From the IMG/VR virus record IMGVR_UViG_3300049460_000312, positions 62,001 to 126,000 of that record: 64,000 nucleotides of DNA; one strand, 5' to 3'. The notes under the pieces are model-generated. The model ran no database searches, was not told where the DNA came from, and worked only from the letters and a program-made list of their open reading frames with translations. Each line of letters begins with the position of its first letter. Position 1 is the stretch's first letter. Shown in pieces: positions 5,748 through 61,692 of the stretch. A program made the position numbers and the translations under genes.

Positions 5748-7088
5748 ATGAATAAACGTGAGTTTTATCTCCGCGCGCTCGCCAATGACGCGTATCTGGT
5801 TACGGCCTGGAATATCGCCTGTTACAGCCTGATCGCCGAAGGGCCAGAAGACTGGAAGCACAACGCCTATCCGTACCGGCTCGTGCAGTTGCCGAACTCG
5901 TACTACTTCGTTGACCCGGAGGACACCTCCAAGCTGATCCAGATTACGGACGGCATAGCGGGCAAGCCGCTCTTCGCCCGCAATGAGCTGATCGAGCTGG
6001 ATGTCGGCGAATTGCCCAACGTCTACGAAAAGGTGATTACCACCTATGGTAACGTGCTCGCGAACCAGATCGTGCTGGTGCGCGCATTCGGTGCCAAGAT
6101 CAAGTTCCAGGTCGGACGGATGAATATCCGTAAGATCGAGAAGATCATCGAGATGCGTCTGCAGGACAAGCGCGACGCCGAAGGACTGGTGGAAGCGGGT
6201 CTGGGTTCGGACGAGGGCAGTAACCTGCTCAAAGCGCCGATCTACGTCGACGAGTACCTGCGCTTCTGTGACGGCGCTTTCTCGCTCGTGGCTTACACCC
6301 AACTCTTCACGCCTGCGGACACGCGCAAGACCATGACCGCGCCACCTGGGGTCAAGGAACTGCGCGATATGCTGGTCAAGCAGAATAAGGATCACCTGCA
6401 TGACCGGGCTGTGGTGGCTGACATCGGGGAGAAGTTGCAGAAGCTGGACGCTGAGTATCTGAAGGGCGACCGCGGTGAGGACTTCCTGATCACGGGCAAG
6501 CTGCGTAAGATCGTGCGCCCGCGTCTGTTCCTGATGTATGGTGCGGAAACCGGCGTGGAAGAAAAGGTGGACGTCGACCTGATCCAGAATTCGCTCGCTG
6601 AAGGTTGGGACATCGACAAGTTCCCCTCGATGAACAACGCATTGCGGGCCGGCTCGTTTAACCGCGGCAAGCAGACCGAGCTCGGTGGGGAGGCGGTGAA
6701 GGATCTGTTCCGTGCTTCGGGTAACCTGAAGATCTCCAGTCCCGACTGTGGTTCGACAGTGGGTCTGCCGACCTATGTCGAGGAAGACCAGGCTGATCGC
6801 ATTATTGGCTTCAGCGTGATCGAAGCAGGTGGTCCGACCAAGGTCACGCAGGATAACGTGGGTAACTACCTGGGCAAGCAGATCTCGTTGCGCTCCTCGA
6901 TGACCTGCAAGAACTCGGTAACTGACTATTGCGCGGTGTGTCTGGGCGATCGTCTCGCTAATACGCCGACGGGGTTATCCATGGCGGTGGCGGACTATGG
7001 TTCAGCGTTCCTGGAAATCTATATGAGTGCGGCTCACTCCAAAGGTATTCAGGTAGCGAGGCTGGACATCAAGAAGCAGCTGATGTAA
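5748..7088 (+). CDS. rpoC: Virion RNA polymerase beta' subunit, middle fragment (phiKZ gp80-like)
   Basis: DCGSTVG...LRSSMTCKNSVTDYCAVCLG matches the RpoC second zinc site (DCG...RSxxxC...CxxCYG). A size of 446 aa and the position fit the split virion RNAP of phiKZ-like phages. Confidence 0.8.
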   Translation: MNKREFYLRALANDAYLVTAWNIACYSLIAEGPEDWKHNAYPYRLVQLPNSYYFVDPEDTSKLIQITDGIAGKPLFARNELIELDVGELPNVYEKVITTYGNVLANQIVLVRAFGAKIKFQVGRMNIRKIEKIIEMRLQDKRDAEGLVEAGLGSDEGSNLLKAPIYVDEYLRFCDGAFSLVAYTQLFTPADTRKTMTAPPGVKELRDMLVKQNKDHLHDRAVVADIGEKLQKLDAEYLKGDRGEDFLITGKLRKIVRPRLFLMYGAETGVEEKVDVDLIQNSLAEGWDIDKFPSMNNALRAGSFNRGKQTELGGEAVKDLFRASGNLKISSPDCGSTVGLPTYVEEDQADRIIGFSVIEAGGPTKVTQDNVGNYLGKQISLRSSMTCKNSVTDYCAVCLGDRLANTPTGLSMAVADYGSAFLEIYMSAAHSKGIQVARLDIKKQLM

Positions 7089-7089
7089 A

Positions 7090-7129
7090 GCGGCATAGCG
7101 GACGGGCCTGGGCCCGTCCTTTATGTCGC
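7090..7129. promoter_or_regulatory. CATA-hairpin-TATG intergenic element (terminator and/or late promoter)
   Basis: GCGGCATA-GC-GGACGGGCC-T-GGGCCCGTCC-TTTATGTCGC; the TATG lies about 30 nt upstream of the 7157 start. Confidence 0.65.
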
Positions 7130-7156
7130 ATTTTATGTCAAGCTGAGGAATACACT

Positions 7157-7858
7157 ATGTTAGAACTTTTATTAGCAGGGAAGGGCCAGCCTGCGCAAAT
7201 TGGTGTGCAGTATAACGGGATTATTCCGGCGGCTTCCCTCATTACGGGTTCAGCACTCTGGGCAGCCATTGGCGCCAGTGGTGGAACCGCTTTTAATGAC
7301 ACCGAAGGATGGCTCAGCTTCGTCCTCGATGGCAAGACTTTGCTAGTTGCCAAAAAAGCTTTTCGTTATAGCGTCACATGGACATCCATCTACAACGCTG
7401 GAGCAGTGTATGGACGTGATGACACGGGACCTGCCGGTCTGTCTTATGCAGGCCTGACAGCGGCGGCGCAGAACAAACGTGTCACCATTAACGGCACGAC
7501 TTACAAGGTGAGATTGCTCACCGGATCAAACACGAACCCGGCACCGAACACGACGGGGGATGCCTTGACCACCACGGCGAACTCGGAATGGGATCGTTTG
7601 ATGTATGCGGTGGCTGCTTCCCGACCGGCTATCTACACCGGTCCCGTCTTGGACAATCTCTCTGACATGGATCTGGGAATCGTCAGCAAAGATGCCGGTG
7701 AAGGCAACGGAGGTTATACCTGGTGTGTGGAACAACACGGCTATGGTGCTACGTATCGCGTCTGTCGTGGATTCTACGATGTGGGCTTTGTGTATCGTGA
7801 AACAGTGAGTTTGTCCAATATTGGCTGGGGCTGGCGTCCAGTGCTCGAAGCCATTTAA
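7157..7858 (+). CDS. Virion/tail-associated paralog-family protein (WRPVLE family)
   Basis: Aligns by eye with 13011..13742 and 60997..61692 (ITGSAL, GWLxF, YxxGAVYG, RVTING, VRL, SEWxRL, C-terminal WRPVLE). Confidence 0.7.
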   Translation: MLELLLAGKGQPAQIGVQYNGIIPAASLITGSALWAAIGASGGTAFNDTEGWLSFVLDGKTLLVAKKAFRYSVTWTSIYNAGAVYGRDDTGPAGLSYAGLTAAAQNKRVTINGTTYKVRLLTGSNTNPAPNTTGDALTTTANSEWDRLMYAVAASRPAIYTGPVLDNLSDMDLGIVSKDAGEGNGGYTWCVEQHGYGATYRVCRGFYDVGFVYRETVSLSNIGWGWRPVLEAI

Positions 7859-7915
7859 CCACACGGAAGCAGGACTTCGGTCCTGCTTTTATGCCGCTCA
7901 GTCCTTTACGAATAC

Positions 7916-7963
7916 AAAAAAAAAAGAGGCCGAAGCCTCTTAGCTCTCCGGTTTCCCGGAGAG
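7916..7963 (-). terminator. Double-hairpin intrinsic terminator after the adhesin gene
   Basis: CTCTCCGG-N4-CCGGAGAG, then AGAGGC-TTCG-GCCTCT followed by a 10-T run on the minus strand. Confidence 0.8.
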
Positions 7964-7976
7964 CGTTTAAGCCAGT

Positions 7977-10184
7977 TTAGAACTGGAAGCCAGCCGAGCC
8001 GACGGCTGCGACATCGCCGCGGGTGCTGCTGGACAGACCCGCCTTGATGACCCAACGGTTGTCACCCGTCACCGTCGACACGCCCACTGCAATGCCTTGC
8101 TGACCATGGTAGGTCGACACGGCAGCAGAGATCATCGACTTGCCCGCTTGCGTCGGTTGCGGCAGACCTGCGATCGCCAGCACCGACGCAAGACCACCGT
8201 AGTTGTCTTTCTTGTAGCTGTCGAACTGGTTCTGCAGATTGCTCACCGCCTTGTCGGTGTAAGCGTACGACTGCTGCTGTGCGTAATTCACCTGACCCAC
8301 GTTGGCGGCATCCGTCGGCGCAGTACCGGCCGCTACGTGCGTGATCTGACGTTCGTTGCCGGCAGCGCCCACCGACACCGTGTTGTCACGATCGGCCACC
8401 GAGTCGGCACCCAGCGCTACCGAGTTCTTCGACGTGACCTGAGCTTTCGCACCCATCTGGCCCTTGTTCATGCTATCGCGCCAGTTGGACAGGTTGTCGA
8501 TCGACTTGGTGTTGCCAGTGATCTGCGTTTGCAGACCTGCTTCCGCCGTGGTAGCCCGTGTCGTTTCGTTGTCGATCTTCGTGTTCAGGCCAGCTTCAGC
8601 CGTTTGCGCGCGAGTCGATTCCGAATTGATGTTGGCCTGCAGCTGGCCTTCCGCGGCTTGGGCACGACCGGACTCAGCACCGACCGCCTTGTCCGTGTAG
8701 TGGTTGGCCGAGCCGAGCGTCTTGCCTGCGACGTAGTCGGTGTAACCCGCCGACGTAGCCACTGCGCCCACGTAAGCTGCCGCAGCAGCTGCATTTGCGT
8801 GCTGGTTCGCTGACGCGAGCGTCTTGGCGTCACCCTTATCCGCATACGACTGAGCGGACTGGAGCGTCGCTGCGTCGCCCGCTTGCTGTTGGGTTTGCAG
8901 GTCATGAGCTACGTTGTTCGTGTAATCGAACGACGTATCGATGGCGGTTTGCACACCCTTGGCAACTGACGTGTCGGTGTAGCTGTTAGCCGACTGCAGT
9001 GTTGCAGCATCACCAGCAGCCCGGGCTTGGGCTTCGGCCTTGATGTCGTGGGCATTCTTGGCCGAGGAAGCCAGGGCTGCGCCACCAACGGCCAGCGCGA
9101 TGTCAGCAGTGCCTTGCGCATGCGCTGCAGCACCTGCGGCGGCGTTAGCCGTACCTTGTGCTTTGTTCACTCCCGACTGCAGACCGGCTTCTGCCGTTTC
9201 AGCACGCGACGTTTCGGACGAGATGGCTTTACCATTTGCGTCTGCCTTGGCATTGGCTGTGTTGGCCGTTGCTTGGGCGTGCTGTGCGTCGCCTTCTGCC
9301 TTCACGGCGATGGCACCCGCTACCAGACCAACACCGAGGGCGGCATCTGCCGTACCTTGTGCATGGGCGGCGGCGCTGCCCGCTGCGGCAGCGGCTGCGT
9401 CAGCATGGTTAGCCGTGCCCTGAGCAGCCGTGGCAGCCTTACCTGCTGCATCGGCCTTCGAGCCCGCGACGTTCGCTGCAGCAGCCGCACCTTCCGCGAC
9501 ACCTTCAGCGTGACCCGCGACGATTGCTGCACCCGTAGCCGTGATCGTGGCACTGGTTGCGATACCCACTGCAACGTCTGCCTTTACGTCCGCACCCTTG
9601 GCGATGGTCGAGGCTTGGTTCGCCGTCGAGACGGCCTGTTGCGAGTTAGACAAGGCCGTGCCGGCTGTGGCGCTCACGCCGTTGACTTGCGATTGCAGGT
9701 TGGCTTCGGCACCCTTGGCACGTGCGGCTTCGTTGGCGACACCGATATCGGCATGGATATTGGCAGAAGCCAGCGTACCGGCTGCGGTATCGGTCACTTC
9801 CTGATGCGTGGCGCTGTTGAGCTGCAGCTCATTGATCGCCGAGGAGTTCGCACTGGTTTGCGTTTGCACCTTAGTGACGTTGGCGTTGGTCGCGTCAAGC
9901 TGGGAGGAGGTTGCAACACCTGTTACCGAACCCGTGACCTTGGTGCCGTTCGACAGCGTCGTGGTAGACGTGTTGCCGTTGATCGACACACTCGTGACCG
10001 TTGCACCGTCTTTGCCGGCTGCACCGGTTGCGCCGATGTCACCCTTGTCACCCTTGTCGCCCTTGTCGCCCTTCGGGCCCTGCTGGCCTTCGCAGGAGAA
10101 AATGTTGCAACTCGTGGCGTGCGCACCCATCGAGAGTGCGGCGAAGGAAGCGAAGACAGCAGCAGCAATGAGATTCTTTTTCAT
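7977..10184 (-). CDS. Trimeric autotransporter adhesin (YadA/Hia family) with a collagen-like segment
   Basis: Sec signal [23 protein letters not shown]; (GXY)10 collagen repeat; Ala-rich stalk with SANxYTD motifs; NSVALG head; neck [20 protein letters not shown]; YadA anchor [14 protein letters not shown]...beta strands ending AGFQF. Confidence 0.92.
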
Positions 10185-10244
10185 GTTGTATCCTGAATTC
10201 CTGATTGAGAGAAGGTTAGATAAGCTGCAAATGGTTGGTACAGC

Positions 10245-10270
10245 TCAAGTTAAGAATATGTGGTTAAAAC
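10245..10270 (-). promoter_or_regulatory. Putative phage promoter (CATATTAC-like) upstream of the adhesin
   Basis: The minus strand reads GTTTTAACCACATATTCTTAACTTGAG; the chimallin upstream motif reads TTTTTGAGTCTCATATTACTAACTTGG. Confidence 0.55.
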
Positions 10271-10334
10271 TTTCTGGAATTGGATTTTGACGGCATAGCG
10301 GGCGGAGCCGAAGCCCCGCCCGCATGCGTTCTAC

Positions 10335-10913
10335 TTAGACCGGAAAATCCGCTTTCTTGATCTTCACCATGCGACCATCAGGATGATGCCACACGATGCC
10401 TTCAATCGGCAGATCCTGCAGGTACGCCTTCAGTGCATCAAAGGTGCGAGGACAATCCTCAATCACATCCTGCCCGTGCGGGTAGAGGCGATGTTCGGTG
10501 AGTCCCTCCGGATTGGCGCCATGGCGTGTACCAATCTTAGGCCCACACGCTTCGTAGGTGCCATCAGGGATTCCAGCAGGCCAGCTCTCACGAGCCCGGT
10601 TTACGGCCTCCATCACGTGCTTGCCCGACGGTGAATTGGCTGTGACCCAACCCGGCCAGTGACCGGTAATGCGATCAGGTTCAGCCTGGGCGGGTACGAA
10701 CGTAGCGGGACGCACCCGACCTACCTTGAGGTCGTAGCGCATGAATACTTCACCGTTCTTTATCAGAACAGCAACACCGTCCCACTTACGCGTCGCGACG
10801 CCTTCTCCGTTAGCGACCCAGAGCGCAGCGGGCATGACTTCATCACGCACACGGCGGCTACCAGTAACGTCACACTCAAGATTACGATGGAACAACGAAA
10901 CGATCTTCTTCAC
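10335..10913 (-). CDS. Compact ATP-dependent RNA ligase-like nucleotidyltransferase (DUF5565/RLIG1-like)
   Basis: A GTG start with a GGAG RBS gives MKKIVSLFHRN. Motif I TRKWDG, motif III-like GTYEACG, motif IV IEGIVW and motif V MVKIK are present. Confidence 0.75.
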   Translation of the reverse strand: MKKIVSLFHRNLECDVTGSRRVRDEVMPAALWVANGEGVATRKWDGVAVLIKNGEVFMRYDLKVGRVRPATFVPAQAEPDRITGHWPGWVTANSPSGKHVMEAVNRARESWPAGIPDGTYEACGPKIGTRHGANPEGLTEHRLYPHGQDVIEDCPRTFDALKAYLQDLPIEGIVWHHPDGRMVKIKKADFPV

Positions 10914-11044
10914 AGCAACTCCGAATGGTGGATAGAAAGTTTCGAATCCCACCACCCCCACCGGAGTATTTACAGCCTTTACTGCGACAACGTGCACAAG
11001 CGGGGCTTTCACCCCGCTTGTGGTTAGCTCGGTTTGGTCATTGC

Positions 11045-11237
11045 TTTCTGAGGGAGGACTCGAACCTCCAATCTTGGTCTGAGACCGGACCCAATGACAG
11101 GCCGACTGTGTCGATAGCATCCATTTCGCACAAGGCACCGAATGCTATCCCGCTTTAGGTGTTCACAGCCTTGCAGATCTCGGCAGAGGGGAAGTCCTGC
11201 CTACTGTCCACGTGTATACCAATTCCACCACTCATCC
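11045..11237 (-). ncRNA. tRNA-Leu-like RNA scaffold with a 115-nt insert in place of the anticodon loop
   Basis: 5' GGATGAG-TG-GTG-GAATTGGTATA-CAC-G (class II D-arm); anticodon stem TGGAC/GTCCG; 16-nt variable region; perfect T-arm GGAGG-TTCGAGT-CCTCC. Only 4 of 7 acceptor pairs form and no CCA is encoded. Confidence 0.55.
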
Positions 11238-11303
11238 TGCTAACGAGCACGGCTGCATGCGACTGCAAGTGCTCCATCAGATCTCTACTGCGGTAAAAAA
11301 ATG

Positions 11304-11612
11304 CTAGATGCTGTTTCTCGGCACCAGCACTTCTTCGAGGACCACTGCTGGCGAATACATCTGCAGCGTCTTGTCGTAATCACTGCCTTGTTCGATCCGC
11401 ATCTCGGCGAGCGTATAGTCATTTTCCAGCGCGACCTTGATGCCCTTCGCTTGCAGCATTTCCTGGATCAGCGAGAGGATCGCGGTCTTGGCGCTACCCA
11501 CGCTGCCGGCCACCGTGATCTTGACGATCGGTCGGTCGGTGCCAGTGAGAACATCAGTGGCCAGACTCAGTTCCGGACGAACGCGTACTTCTGCTACGGG
11601 GATGTCAGACAT
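11304..11612 (-). CDS. Small protein with a degenerate P-loop (kinase-like N-terminus)
   Basis: AAGGAG RBS. ITVAGSVGSAKTAILSLIQEMLQAKGIKV resembles a beta-strand/Walker A/helix of NMP-kinase-like proteins, but has A in place of the G before KT. Confidence 0.55.
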   Translation of the reverse strand: MSDIPVAEVRVRPELSLATDVLTGTDRPIVKITVAGSVGSAKTAILSLIQEMLQAKGIKVALENDYTLAEMRIEQGSDYDKTLQMYSPAVVLEEVLVPRNSI

Positions 11613-13010: not shown

Positions 13011-13742
13011 ATGTTGGAGCTATTACTGGCTAGTCCTAAAAAGGCCATCGTAGGATTACCGAGTAACACCGGCCCAGGCCCAACTACTTTAGTTGGCTCG
13101 AACGCCACGGCAGGGTTCTACGGGGAACTCACCTCGGCCAGCTTTATCAGTGGGAGTGCGCTGGCGGCAGCCTGCGGTCTCGTTGCAGGCACCCTGATGA
13201 ATGACACCGCGTCGTGGCTGAAGTTCTTTCTGGATGATAAAGTTCTCTTTATTCCTAAATTGGGCATTCGCACCAGTTTTTACTGGCAAGACCTGTATCA
13301 GGCTGGTGTAGTCTATGGCGACGGGACTATTGGTAAGAACCCGGCAGGTGCAAATCGATTACAGAATGCCCGAGTCTCCGTGCAGGGTTATACCTTTATT
13401 GTTCGCCTCATGAAGTGTGCGAACAGCGATCCCTATGTCGATTACACAACTAACGATCCGGTATCCAGCACGACTTCGGAATGGAATCGGTTGATGTACA
13501 ACATCTGCGATACCGCTGCGTCTAAAAGCTCGCAGGTGGGGCCGAACTGGACGCACTATACCGAGGCGCAGCTCGGGATGAACTACTACACCTGGGGGCA
13601 GGAGACGCCGTCTAACTCGGGGGCTCAAGCTCGCATCGTCCGTGCGGCGAGCTCGCTTTCGTACGCGACCTATGGCTGGCTCACCACCCCCTATAACACC
13701 TGTGTCTGGCGACCCGTGCTGGAACTGGTGCCACCCGCATAA
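13011..13742 (+). CDS. Virion/tail-associated paralog-family protein (WRPVLE family)
   Basis: Start MLELLL inside ORF 12762..13742; paralog of 7157..7858 and 60997..61692. Confidence 0.7.
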   Translation: MLELLLASPKKAIVGLPSNTGPGPTTLVGSNATAGFYGELTSASFISGSALAAACGLVAGTLMNDTASWLKFFLDDKVLFIPKLGIRTSFYWQDLYQAGVVYGDGTIGKNPAGANRLQNARVSVQGYTFIVRLMKCANSDPYVDYTTNDPVSSTTSEWNRLMYNICDTAASKSSQVGPNWTHYTEAQLGMNYYTWGQETPSNSGAQARIVRAASSLSYATYGWLTTPYNTCVWRPVLELVPPA

Positions 13743-39150: not shown

Positions 39151-41265
39151 TTAGTAGTTGCCTGCACCACCCGTGTTGGTGGCACGCTGATGCGCGTAGC
39201 GGCCGAACGAGCCCGCTGCCACACCTGCGGCTGCATTGCGACGCATGCCCGACGGCACGAACGAACCAGCCGTGCCGAGGTTCGTCGGCAGGTTGCGCAT
39301 GTACGGAGCAACCATACGTGCGGTGCCCTGCGGAGCCGAGACGCCGACCTTCGTTTCGTACACGATACCTGCTTCCGCAACTGCTGCGGCGATAGCGTAG
39401 ATGAACGTCGGGTTGAACGTCACGCGAACCGAGCGACCGGTGATGGTCATCGATTCGAACAGGCCTTGCTGGATACGACGCGTTTCGGTCAGACGGAACA
39501 TCGGATCGACTTCTGCGTTGGCCTGCAGGTTCGACCAGTCGTTGATGGTTTCCAGCTCGCTGTCGCCCGTGGCGTTCAGCACGCAGAGGTAGTCGCCGTC
39601 GCGGATGTCGCGCTTGCCGCCTTGTGCGAAGTAGAAACCGTTGTTCACGTACATGTTGTCGTTGAACACCGGAGCCTTCATCACACCGCCGTTGGCCGCC
39701 TTGTAGATCGGCGAGAACTTGCCGCCCGTCAGCAGGTCTGCTGCGTCGAACAGGTCCTTGATCGCGTTCTGGTCACCGCGTGCAGCTGCGGCGAACACGC
39801 CCGTGATCCAGCTCGACGGACCGCTTTCCGGCACGTCCATGGAGATGAGCAGCGGTTCCAGATGGAAGTACGTCTGGATGACAGCGGCGAGCGCTGCATC
39901 GTTGACGTTCGCGCTGTTCAGCGGCAGACGGCCAGCCTTCGGCAGTTCGCCACCCATGTAGCCCATCGGCATTTGCTGCGGTGCTTCCAGACCGATTGCC
40001 GACAGGTCGCGGATGTTCATGCCGCCTTCCTGATGGCTCGCGCCGTTCTTGTGCTGCTGGATCAACGCGCCGATCCAACGGTTGTCGTTGTACAGCGCTT
40101 GCGTGGTCGCGAGACCTTGCAGGATCACCGGCAGTTCGCACACGTCGTCCGGTGCATCGATGTTCGTGATGACCAGGCGCGGCGTGTAGATCTTCAGCTG
40201 ATCCGGCGTTTGCGCCATGTTGCCCATACCGCCGAACTGCGCAGGCGACGAAGCCGTCGACGGCGTCGAGGTCAGGTCGATGTAGCCGAGCAGCTGCGTG
40301 AGCAACGTCTTCGCTTGCGACGTGTTGTACTGGAACTCACCGGTGTTCTGGTTGTTCTGCTGCTTGCCCGTCAGCATCGACATTTCCAGCACGACGTCGC
40401 CGCGTACCGGCTGGCCGTTCAAGTCGACGAAGTGACCCCAGCTCGACTTGATTTCGTTCTGGAACGTCTGTTGCGCCATTTCCGGCGTGATCGTCCAGCT
40501 GTCTTCTGCGACCATCGTGGCGAGCATCACCGACGTTGCCGTCGTCGCGTTGGCGATGACGTTACGCACCGCTTCTTCCGAACGCAGGTCCAGATCCGCC
40601 GGCACGACGTTCGATTCTGCGTCGATCAGCGTGTAGCCGCGGTAGTTGTCCGAGATGATCTGCACGACACGGGCGCGCAGCGTTGCGTCGTACGCGTCAG
40701 CCGGGACGACCAGGCGTTCGTACTTGATGCCGTTGCCGAACTGCGCTTCGACAGCGGTCTGACCGCGGGCGGTTTGCGCGAGCAACAGCGTGTGGTAGGC
40801 GACGTACTTTTCGCCGGCGTTTTCCTGGCCCTTCAGGACCGCTGCGACGACCAGTGCCGAGATGAGCAGGCCTTCCTTTTCACCGTCGAGCGCGAAGAAC
40901 GCGAACTTGACGGGCTGGTCGACTTCACCTTCGGCGATCTTGTCGGTGACTTCGACGATGGCGCGCATGGCTTGCGAAGTGGCCGCGCGCGAGATGCCGT
41001 AGTTTTGACGGGTGGAGATCATGGAACGGGTTCCTTGCGATTGAGTATTGTTGGTGGTTTGATGCGAAGCTTGCTGGGTTTGCGGTGCGGCACCCTGCGT
41101 GCCGGTGTTGCTAGCAGCGGCTGCGGCGGCGGCGAAGGTATTCTTCTTGCCCGGCGCCTGCGGCGGCTGCTTGTTCGGTTCGGAAGGCGTCGAAGCCGAC
41201 GTGTCGGCAGCCTTTTCACCATTGTTGTTTCCGTCGCTACCGTTGTCGTCGACTTGGATGGCCAT
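39151..41265 (-). CDS. chmA: Chimallin, major nuclear shell protein (phiKZ gp54-like)
   Basis: 704 aa with very strong codon bias, a disordered N-terminus and an extended C-terminal tail. It lies immediately upstream of nvRNAP beta'-N and downstream of the DNA polymerase, the conserved chimallin locus. Confidence 0.78.
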   Translation of the reverse strand: MAIQVDDNGSDGNNNGEKAADTSASTPSEPNKQPPQAPGKKNTFAAAAAAASNTGTQGAAPQTQQASHQTTNNTQSQGTRSMISTRQNYGISRAATSQAMRAIVEVTDKIAEGEVDQPVKFAFFALDGEKEGLLISALVVAAVLKGQENAGEKYVAYHTLLLAQTARGQTAVEAQFGNGIKYERLVVPADAYDATLRARVVQIISDNYRGYTLIDAESNVVPADLDLRSEEAVRNVIANATTATSVMLATMVAEDSWTITPEMAQQTFQNEIKSSWGHFVDLNGQPVRGDVVLEMSMLTGKQQNNQNTGEFQYNTSQAKTLLTQLLGYIDLTSTPSTASSPAQFGGMGNMAQTPDQLKIYTPRLVITNIDAPDDVCELPVILQGLATTQALYNDNRWIGALIQQHKNGASHQEGGMNIRDLSAIGLEAPQQMPMGYMGGELPKAGRLPLNSANVNDAALAAVIQTYFHLEPLLISMDVPESGPSSWITGVFAAAARGDQNAIKDLFDAADLLTGGKFSPIYKAANGGVMKAPVFNDNMYVNNGFYFAQGGKRDIRDGDYLCVLNATGDSELETINDWSNLQANAEVDPMFRLTETRRIQQGLFESMTITGRSVRVTFNPTFIYAIAAAVAEAGIVYETKVGVSAPQGTARMVAPYMRNLPTNLGTAGSFVPSGMRRNAAAGVAAGSFGRYAHQRATNTGGAGNY

Positions 41266-41344
41266 GGTACTTTCCTTTTACGGTTGATGGTTTAGACAAA
41301 CAGGCTTTGCAAAGCTGTCTTTTGGAGCATAGCGCACTGTACTC

Positions 41345-41371
41345 CAAGTTAGTAATATGAGACTCAAAAAT
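41345..41371 (-). promoter_or_regulatory. Putative phage promoter for chimallin, CATATTAC motif
   Basis: The minus strand reads TTTTTGAGTCTCATATTACTAACTTGG, about 85 nt upstream of the start; the leader contains a GCTTTGCAAAGC hairpin. Confidence 0.7.
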
Positions 41372-41613
41372 CTTTGAATCCAATTCCACTCGGTAGACAG
41401 GGTTGCTAAGTTCCCACGACATCATAGTCGTGGGGCAGAGGAGGGCTCGATGGCTGTTCTCTTCTACACAATATATAACGGTGTAAATTTATACCTTTGT
41501 TCTTATTCTCCGTACGAAACGTGGGACTACAGCCCAATCTTGTAGACAATTTCAGCGGGACTCCCACTCTTAAGAGGCCCAGCATCCAGAACTCACTATA
41601 GTCAGCTCCAGCC

Positions 41614-60996: not shown

Positions 60997-61692
60997 ATGC
61001 TCGAAGCATTACTACAAATACCCGCCGGTGCTGCCGCTGGAGGTGGCTCTGGCCTCAATGGCAATCCTACCACCCTTATCGCTGGTGATTCAAACGCAGG
61101 CTTCTATGGCGAGACTGATGGCAGCCAACTGATCACTGGCACTGCCCTGGCTAGCGCGATTGGTTTAGGCGCCGGCACCGATATCAATTCAACCGGTGGC
61201 TGGCTCAAGTTCTCCTGGAAGGGAAAGCCGCTGTACATTGCCAAGATGCCGTTCCGCGATAACTGTCCTTGGCAATACATCTACCAGAGCGGCGCTGTCT
61301 ATGGTGACGATACTGTCGGCACTTATCCTAGTGGCTTTAACCGCGTGCAGGACGCACGAGTTACCATCAACGGTGTCGTGCATCGAGTGAGACTGATGCA
61401 CATGGCTCTAACCGCCACCTCGCCACACGGCGTCCGTCCGGTTGCTGGAACCGAAGCCAATGATCTCTGGCTTGCGATCAAGGCCAATGCGGGCGGGCTT
61501 GCTAGCTATACCGATGCCCAGGTCGGACAGCCCACCGGGTCTTACTACTTCTCCGGCATTGAGTCCATGACCGGCACTACGACGATGTGTCTGTTGATGA
61601 ACAACGCTCTTCAGCTGTCGAACGACAACAAGACGCAAGGCAACGTCAACGGCGTTCACTTCCTGTGGCGACCGGTCCTGGAACCGATTTAA
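60997..61692 (+). CDS. Virion/tail-associated paralog-family protein (WRPVLE family)
   Basis: MLEALL start; paralog of 7157..7858 and 13011..13742. Confidence 0.7.
   Translation: MLEALLQIPAGAAAGGGSGLNGNPTTLIAGDSNAGFYGETDGSQLITGTALASAIGLGAGTDINSTGGWLKFSWKGKPLYIAKMPFRDNCPWQYIYQSGAVYGDDTVGTYPSGFNRVQDARVTINGVVHRVRLMHMALTATSPHGVRPVAGTEANDLWLAIKANAGGLASYTDAQVGQPTGSYYFSGIESMTGTTTMCLLMNNALQLSNDNKTQGNVNGVHFLWRPVLEPI

Follow-up and report, generated by a model that had tools for sequence, protein, structure and literature searches.

A complete trimeric autotransporter gene behind a predicted phiKZ-type early promoter in a chimallin-encoding jumbo phage

A complete gene for a trimeric autotransporter adhesin (TAA) was identified on the minus strand of a 64,000-nucleotide stretch of viral DNA (hereafter the window), which comprises bases 62,001–126,000 of the 283,373-bp virus record IMGVR_UViG_3300049460_000312, a record with direct terminal repeats that is estimated to be 100% complete. 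The gene lies in the genome of a chimallin-encoding jumbo phage and follows a promoter resembling the early promoters of phage phiKZ, and we consider it very probable that its product is a phage TAA transcribed early in infection and displayed on the surface of the infected cell. Regarding the purpose of such a fibre, we tentatively favour masking of the cell surface and exclusion of superinfecting phages over adhesion.

The coding sequence (7977–10184, minus strand, as are all parts of the protein given below) has an ATG start and encodes 735 amino acids followed by a stop codon; it was characterised by translation of open reading frames (ORFs) and by searches with Pfam, NCBIfam and PDB profiles. 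Residues 1–23 (10116–10184) form a predicted Sec signal peptide, called by inspection alone (MKKN, a hydrophobic core and AHA/TS) and kept in all relatives. The C-terminal part, residues 634–735 (7980–8285), comprises the last coiled coil and a YadA-type membrane anchor ending in GSAGFQF, assigned by Pfam YadA_anchor (PF03895; residues 675–735, 53.4 bits against a cut-off of 22.7) and by the anchor structures of Hia, YadA and AtaA. The terminal residue is the aromatic Phe, and the relatives end in F or W. The preceding neck (residues 577–633, 8286–8456) was recognised from PDB profile matches to the necks of SadA, BpaC, YadA and EibD, and neck and anchor are 53–56% identical to cellular TAAs over approximately 150–160 residues. 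Matches of the family in the PDB profile search (SadA, BpaA, BpaC, Hia, YadA, EibD, AtaA and UspA1) were restricted to the last ~210 positions, and the NCBIfam BimA and YadA models also matched the C-terminal part only. The first-pass annotation of this DNA had described an intact TAA of 735 residues with signal peptide, stalk, neck and anchor with a terminal Phe, and the ORF, the PF03895 match and the PDB profile matches agree with that description.

The passenger begins, at what would be the distal end of the fibre, with two cysteines (Cys26 and Cys31) and ten collagen-like G-X-Y triplets at residues 33–62 (9999–10109), identified from alignments and a sub-threshold Pfam Collagen match (residues 33–60, 21.9 bits); the number of triplets differs among strains and among relatives. 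Alignments and a hidden Markov model (HMM) defined a conserved tip mini-domain at residues 57–108 (9861–10016; GKDGA-V--V-I-G-T--T-LSNG--V-G-VTG-ATS-QL), for which three short strands were predicted with a predicted local distance difference test score (pLDDT) of 66–78 inside an otherwise poor model. Residues 109–576 (8457–9860) constitute a predicted Ala-rich, modular coiled-coil stalk that includes E--RA--AE--L repeats, as judged from the model helices and from module gain and loss among relatives. Long helices were predicted at residues 93–573 in the AlphaFold2 model, albeit with low confidence, and residues 501–555 are 55–60% identical to Vibrio phage tail-fibre proteins. Inputs to the remote profile search and structure prediction were the window sequence and two IMG/VR sequences; the AlphaFold2 monomer, built on this three-sequence alignment, had a mean pLDDT of 44, too poor for fold searches, and an ESM Atlas search with residues 24–125 returned only collagen-dominated leads with scores below 0.9. 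Pfam detected no Hep_Hag or YadA_head domain and reported no YadA_stalk at E-values up to 0.1, and the protein has no canonical head. In the daTAA classification a head is usual in TAAs, but the anchor alone defines the family. The idea that the tip had been copied from a receptor-binding protein of the same phage was rejected at the sequence level, since the tip HMM matched the TAA alone among all ORFs of the genome. Judged from its predicted domains, the 735-residue protein is a complete trimeric autotransporter with a new passenger architecture within a known superfamily.

A phiKZ-type early promoter was predicted upstream of the TAA gene (10240–10289, minus strand) by a matrix scan and comparison with phiKZ and Burkholderia glumae phage FLC9; it consists of a T-rich upstream part and the box ATATTCT at 10253–10259. 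In the matrix scan, the chimallin gene was likewise preceded by a promoter of this class (41339–41388, minus strand). The two motifs whose resemblance had been pointed out in the first-pass annotation lie at 10246–10260 and 41345–41359, both on the minus strand, and their similarity exceeds chance likeness, as both belong to a discrete class of 25 sites. A matrix seeded with 14 ATATTAC sites having a common upstream pattern recovered these 25 sites in the genome, all 25 on the minus strand, with the approximate consensus atT-aA-Tc-A--attttttAa-caCATATtAC-Aa--tga. The class is sharply delimited, with 25 positions scoring at least 20 bits and none between 15 and 20, while the maximum in shuffled genomes was 22.9. 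Scored with a matrix built from the other 24 sites, the TAA promoter reached 35.8 bits, a value equalled or exceeded at only 16 of 566,648 positions. The sites are situated 18–159 nucleotides before ORF starts, and the genes behind them include those for chimallin and an RNA polymerase subunit (phrog_3295) as well as conserved genes of unknown function. Members within the window are found at 10259, 25859, 31757, 41358, 46538, 55233, 58409 and 60469, all on the minus strand. Taken together, the 25 sites provide a map of the presumed early transcription units of an uncultured phage.

The assignment of this class to early transcription draws on phiKZ, in which an early-promoter motif, an extended −10 box with a T-rich upstream part, has been described together with a primary start site at PHIKZ054 (PMC8244752). 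AT-rich −10 motifs of this kind can be found bioinformatically for each phage and proved to be early promoters of the virion polymerase wherever they were tested (PMC7598289). In phiKZ the core reads TTTATATTACTAAATTGAA, 80 nucleotides before gp054, and in FLC9 the core before the chimallin gene reads CACATATCACTAACTTG. The pattern TATATTAC-N-AA occurs 15 times in phiKZ; 13 of the 15 occurrences share a strand and several fall in the early region at the left end. Counts for a control pattern were 1 and 0. The window phage has in common with phiKZ and FLC9 the core ATATTAC-N-AA after a T-rich stretch before chimallin, and a strong strand bias. It differs from phiKZ in its GC-richer genome, in the upstream half TTGAA-TC-AAA, which is lineage-specific, and in that the start site here is a predicted one, at about 10240–10247 on the minus strand. 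Because the core matches the mapped phiKZ early promoter, it is reasonable to infer that the TAA promoter belongs to the early class and that the gene is expressed early.

At the predicted 5′ end of the TAA mRNA, folding revealed a stem-loop (10221–10247, minus strand; −9.4 kcal/mol, z −3.55). The box, a GAGC start region and a hairpin precede the TAA gene in FLC9 and in every chimallin-phage relative (loci L001, L061–L066 and L070), and the stem sequences differ between them (GAGCTG/CAGCTC, GAGTTGG/CCAACT and others), which indicates covariation. The possibility that all 25 promoters share a 5′ hairpin was considered and rejected, as z fell below −1 in only 11 of the 25 and the mean energy did not fall below that of random windows. 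Downstream of the TAA stop codon, a hairpin search identified two terminator hairpins (7914–7964, minus strand), one at 7943–7964 and one at 7924–7941 followed by a T-run, confirming the double terminator that had been ascribed to the gene.

The carrier encodes chimallin (coding sequence 39151–41265, minus strand; phrog_4795, E 8e-135) that is 89–90% identical to the chimallin of Ralstonia phage FLC1-1B. Four split RNA polymerase subunit genes (PHROGs 2962, 3295, 3015 and 2987) are present in the window, and the genome encodes a DNA polymerase. The closest isolates are the Ralstonia jumbo phages FLC1-1B and FLC4-3B (~81% nucleotide identity in the flanks), RP12 and RP31. No tyrosine integrase was found in the carrier genome, and serine recombinases were not searched for. 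On the basis of chimallin, the split RNA polymerase and a genome of more than 200 kb, the carrier is a chimallin-encoding jumbo phage that would be expected to form a phage nucleus. The earlier statement that an intact TAA resides in a lytic nucleus-forming phage therefore stands in the form of a chimallin-encoding genome without a tyrosine integrase, with nucleus formation predicted from gene content.

The phage DNA was detected in several metagenomes of rhizosphere and soil. A single 64-kb contig spans the TAA region in the probable source sample. In an independent sample, with 116–175× coverage and its own single-nucleotide polymorphisms (SNPs), contigs cover positions 6600–11400 continuously; one of 22.5 kb connects the RNA polymerase gene with a neighbouring ORF of 233 amino acids, and another of 2.9 kb extends from the 5′ end of the TAA gene across the promoter to reach the RNA ligase gene. 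The right junction was crossed in a third sample as well. An assembly chimera with host DNA, which had been named in advance as an outcome that would overturn the first-pass annotation, is ruled out because independent samples tile both junctions. The G+C content at third codon positions (GC3) of the TAA gene is 0.67, within the interquartile range of 0.61–0.755 of the long ORFs of the phage, and by composition the gene is phage DNA; the G+C content of the locus is 0.62 compared with a genome mean of 0.56.

Comparison with related phages showed that the TAA gene lies in an insertion. FLC1-1B and RP12 have a convergent RNA ligase gene immediately after the RNA polymerase beta-prime gene, and the aligned FLC1-1B spacer holds one hairpin between the two, whereas in the window approximately 3.2 kb separates them. 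No YadA anchor was found anywhere in the genomes of FLC1-1B, RP12 or phiKZ, and RP31 and FLC4-3B showed the same match pattern as their sister phages. Spacer alignment identified an intergenic terminator element, a 12-base leader plus hairpin (GCGGCATAGCGG + hairpin), at both ends of the insertion, with the left copy at 7090–7127 (plus strand) and the right copy at 10290–10323 (strand not assigned), after the stop codon of the RNA ligase gene. The single hairpin in FLC1-1B and the presence of the element at both ends here suggest that the 3.2-kb DNA was acquired through recombination inside a terminator. Equipped with a promoter and terminators of its own, and absent from FLC1-1B and RP12, the TAA cassette has the make-up of a moron, and its absence from close relatives points to a gene that is probably dispensable.

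The second gene of the insertion is the 233-amino acid ORF (7157–7858, plus strand), which has matches to PHROGs labelled virion structural protein and is followed by its own terminator hairpin (7869–7892, plus strand; hairpin search), convergent with the TAA terminators. It is one of six paralogues in the phage that are 30–42% identical; others are located at 13116–13727 and 61105–61479 in the window and at 247185–249776 in the genome. Outside the window, a 1199-amino acid open frame with collagen-like repeats (G000:C1:250860–255428) adjoins three of these paralogues and is probably part of a tail-fibre region. The RNA ligase encoded beside the TAA gene (10338–10913, minus strand) is 71–73% identical to those of two FLC9-like contigs (L083 and L084) whose chimallin is ~28% identical, and in these contigs the RNA ligase gene is ~8 kb from the TAA gene. 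The RNA ligase may represent a second exchanged gene or a recombination anchor.

Homologs of the TAA were identified in other large phages. Among them is gp240 of the cultured phage FLC9, annotated as hypothetical, which is 65% identical over 703 residues. Relatives were present on 17 IMG/VR contigs, ten of them jumbo-sized (159, 172, 218, 244, 254, 285, 310, 313, 315 and 524 kb). The N-terminal plan of signal peptide, Cys pair, variable collagen and tip motif is kept in 8 of these 10, the motif in relatives reading G-DGASV-GV-I-G-TV-T-LSNG--V-G-V-GLATS-QL. Two complete jumbo genomes, of 218 kb (L068) and 524 kb (L077), have anchors belonging to the phage clade but N-terminal parts that differ, and no chimallin was detectable in either genome. 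Two shorter members of 349 and 431 amino acids are located among small ORFs that form long arrays on a single strand, as is typical of early regions in phages. The 431-residue member, on a 42-kb phage-like contig (L059; 1690–1730 and 4796–5674), has a perfect TTGACA-17-TATAAT sigma-70 promoter and is 1.7 kb from an AcrVA2-like gene in an apparent early anti-defence array.

The distribution of the family points to exchange between phages. FLC9 and the 310–315-kb contigs are syntenic around the TAA gene. The window shares nothing with FLC9 or these contigs outside the coding region, and nucleotide similarity to FLC9 and the IMG/VR relatives in BLASTN begins within the coding sequence. Travel of the flanks with the gene was rejected, as TBLASTN searches with five flanking proteins against the loci of all relatives gave no matches; the TAA gene alone moves. 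Chimallins were found on three further TAA-bearing contigs. Across five lineages the chimallins are 26–42% identical and the TAAs 54–84%, except for the TAA of the 285-kb contig (L070; 34–41%). FLC9 and the 254-kb contig have chimallins that are 42% and TAAs that are 84% identical, and for the window and the 310-kb contig the values are ~28% for chimallin and 89% for the anchor. Because most of the TAAs are far more alike than the chimallins, the comparison indicates that the family has spread horizontally among very divergent chimallin phages.

An anchor phylogeny was computed with FastTree (Shimodaira–Hasegawa-like local supports) from the last 95 residues and the 148 best non-redundant public matches. 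The window sequence groups with three FLC9-like contigs (support 94) inside an all-phage clade of eight (support 98), and 16 of the 17 phage TAAs belong to one clade of 23 (support 92) that includes at least one clearly chromosomal TAA; given the short alignment and the local nature of the supports, the tree indicates a pattern and is no proof of it. In an exhaustive HMM search of 1.84 billion representative proteins, the passenger (the first ~575 residues) had no cellular match, all matches being to neck and anchor, and among 185,579 species genomes no close relative of the TAA was found, the matches being to collagen repeats and a Neisseria anchor at 35% only. The nearest named relative is a YadA-family adhesin of Candidatus Burkholderia verschuerenii, 53% identical over 159 amino acids. 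A phylogeny against TAAs of Burkholderiales had been proposed as a check, and cellular kin do exist for anchor and neck, but the passenger has no cellular relative and the nearest kin are in jumbo phages. The most economical history would be that an ancient capture from Burkholderiaceae-like TAAs supplied anchor and neck, that the passenger was built in phages and that transfer from phage to phage followed, with the window lineage as a recipient of the gene.

Intact copies of the gene are present in more than ten phage genomes, and the family is under purifying selection. Pairwise ratios of nonsynonymous to synonymous substitution rates (dN/dS; Nei–Gojobori) were 0.20–0.31 overall, with dS ~1 between the window and the FLC9 group. 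By region, they were 0.15–0.24 in the stalk, 0.15–0.40 in neck and anchor and 0.39–0.68 in the first 130 residues, a stretch containing the signal peptide and the variable collagen. All four population SNPs seen in the TAA gene in other samples were synonymous, and the sole indel was an in-frame 9-bp deletion at 10037 in sample X2 that removes exactly one K-G-D unit of the collagen; metagenome contigs of other organisms pile up on the collagen repeat, where depth is unreliable. In a contig pair with flanks 93% identical, the passenger was 67–70% identical with gain and loss of modules and the anchor 87%. The fibre is thus modular and changes rapidly in length, since the passenger diverges more than the anchor and flanks. 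Across lineages the tip motif of ~45 residues is almost invariant, while stalk and collagen lengths vary.

These features suggest the following sequence of events. Given the promoter homology, the injected virion RNA polymerase would transcribe the TAA gene within minutes of infection. By analogy with type Vc secretion, the precursor would cross the inner membrane via Sec, and three C-termini would form a 12-stranded barrel inserted by the barrel assembly machinery (BAM). The passenger would then be threaded outwards to give a trimeric fibre of Ala-rich coiled coil, carrying at its distal end the small conserved beta domain, the collagen triple helix and the Cys pair. Simple arithmetic on ~480 helical and 30 collagen residues, as opposed to a model, gives a length of ~80–90 nm. 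A palisade of such fibres could quickly cover the infected cell and mask its surface. Masking would hinder adsorption of competing and sister phages, and possibly other contact-dependent attack, while the jumbo phage goes through its long latent period; in addition, it could shield a slow-cycling cell from faster phages and limit the loss of progeny on cell debris.

Surface masking with superinfection exclusion is the purpose we consider most plausible, although we advance it tentatively. It is favoured because the protein has no canonical head, its tip is invariant across hosts, its length varies and its expression is predicted to be early. Lytic phages are known to carry early exclusion genes, such as imm and sp of T4 and llp of T5, which block superinfection. 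Blocking of superinfection had been offered as the alternative in the first-pass annotation, and it fits the data at least as well as the adhesion that was put forward there. Several points weigh against the masking proposal. The computed results do not separate masking from adhesion, and the TAA of Burkholderia phage BCSR5 has classical YadA heads, which argues that phages can select for adhesion. In the literature searched, no TAA was reported to block phage adsorption. The assignment of the promoter to the early class is by homology only, and with a poor TAA model (pLDDT 44) the geometry of the fibre is an estimate.

The adhesin and autoagglutinin function originally proposed, by which infected cells would stick to uninfected neighbours, surfaces or plant material and release progeny among hosts, appears possible but on balance unlikely. 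Adhesion and autoaggregation are common functions of TAAs (PMC7568254; PMC12511318), the gene is maintained and driven by an early-type promoter, the BCSR5 protein shows that a phage TAA can have canonical heads, the phage was found in rhizosphere samples, where cells live attached, and a conserved tip could bind a conserved ligand or itself. However, the window TAA lacks such a head, and homotypic aggregation requires the protein on both cells, whereas uninfected cells have none. A binder of host receptors should also vary with the host, whereas the tip hardly differs between phages of different hosts and is unrelated to the phage's own proteins, for example its tail fibre.

Another surface role, such as protection from protists, tailocins or contact-dependent killing, retention in biofilms, or altered envelope stability or lysis timing, seems improbable. 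The facts that support masking support it equally, and the collagen-tipped naps of the Bacillus BclA type act as general barriers; it lacks specific evidence of its own and overlaps with masking. It is very unlikely that the locus represents host DNA, an assembly chimera or a functionless, decaying passenger gene, as might be read from the insertion relative to FLC1-1B and RP12 and from a G+C content above the genome mean, since independent samples cross both junctions, GC3 is phage-like, close bacterial relatives were absent from both database searches, and the low dN/dS, synonymous SNPs and intact copies in other phages speak against decay. Least probable of all is a virion part, a tail fibre reusing a TAA-like C-terminus: phrog_26246 is labelled tail protein, the stalk resembles Vibrio phage tail fibres at residues 501–555, collagen repeats are common in tail fibres and the adjoining ORF belongs to a virion-structural PHROG family, but the protein carries a cleavable Sec signal peptide together with a membrane-barrel anchor whose last residue is aromatic, its promoter is of early and not late type, and it is absent from close relatives with the same virion.

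No paper describing a TAA in a jumbo or lytic phage was found in our literature search, and database records label members of the family hypothetical or tail protein. The family appears to be previously undescribed, and both its carriers, lytic nucleus-forming phages, and its regulatory setting are new. Studies of nucleus-forming phages have centred on the shielding of DNA inside the cell, and the TAA directs attention to the outside of the infected cell, whose surface these phages probably re-dress. A mobile, conserved fibre with an early promoter suggests that they manage surface contacts during a long latent period. As a wider and more speculative proposal, which we hold to be possible but doubtful, nucleus-forming jumbo phages of soil Burkholderiaceae would carry phage-specific collagen-tipped fibres, switched on at once by the injected virion polymerase, as a virus-made outer coat whose tip binds a host structure or itself; such control of contacts would exclude rivals or capture hosts. 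If correct, it would provide the first demonstration of a surface adhesin or exclusion fibre at work in a strictly lytic cycle. Several relatives, among them FLC9 and the Ralstonia FLC phages, are under development for biocontrol of crop disease, and a change in host adhesion or the blocking of companion phages in a cocktail would be of practical importance. As FLC9 and its host are in culture, the function is directly testable.

Among the known systems closest to the window TAA are the Eib proteins of Escherichia coli prophages (EibA, C, D, E, F and G), which are also phage-borne and combine a neck, a coiled-coil stalk and a YadA anchor; the EibD neck matched in the PDB search, and eibC and eibD records matched weakly. 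The Eib genes belong to temperate prophages and serve the lysogen through serum resistance, immunoglobulin binding and chain formation, and their products have a YadA-like head. In contrast, the window TAA is carried by a lytic, integrase-free chimallin phage, has a putative early promoter of the phage polymerase and an unrelated passenger consisting of collagen, tip and Ala-rich stalk. Cellular type Vc proteins (YadA, SadA, BpaA, BpaC, Hia, AtaA and UspA1) have the same predicted export route and the similarity in neck and anchor described above, but the phage passenger has no cellular match and is devoid of Hep_Hag or YadA_head repeats. Lom and Bor of lambda, Llp of T5, Cor, and Imm and Sp of T4 are likewise products of autonomous accessory genes that change the envelope; none is an autotransporter or a long fibre and no homology to the TAA was found. 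Single-gene moron-like units have been described in virulent phages, including phiKZ (PMC10914365). With Bacillus BclA, Streptococcus Scl and collagen-containing phage tail fibres, the TAA has in common a trimeric fibre whose distal end bears a G-X-Y triple helix that varies in length, but these proteins are anchored differently and the repeat alone is shared.

Complete TAAs were also found in two further groups of jumbo phages. Phage BCSR5 encodes a TAA of 1261 amino acids (QRE00188.1; L058:314–4096) with signal peptide, heads, ten stalk motifs and anchor, the passenger of which is unrelated in sequence to that of the window TAA. Among Salmonella and Klebsiella phages of ~350 kb, complete TAAs are present in Munch, 7t3, SE_PL, PHA46 and fENko-Kae01. 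Salmonella phage Munch gp428 (L057:2011–3333), of 441 amino acids, has signal peptide, collagen, coiled coil and anchor in the same order as the window TAA, but its passenger is unrelated and it falls outside the phage anchor clade. Both the BCSR5 and the Munch proteins are annotated as hypothetical. TAAs are usually seen as virulence factors of bacteria, and the present family constitutes a long-lived lineage in lytic phage genomes; its occurrence alongside complete TAAs in two further jumbo-phage groups means that uptake of such genes by large lytic phages has been recurrent.

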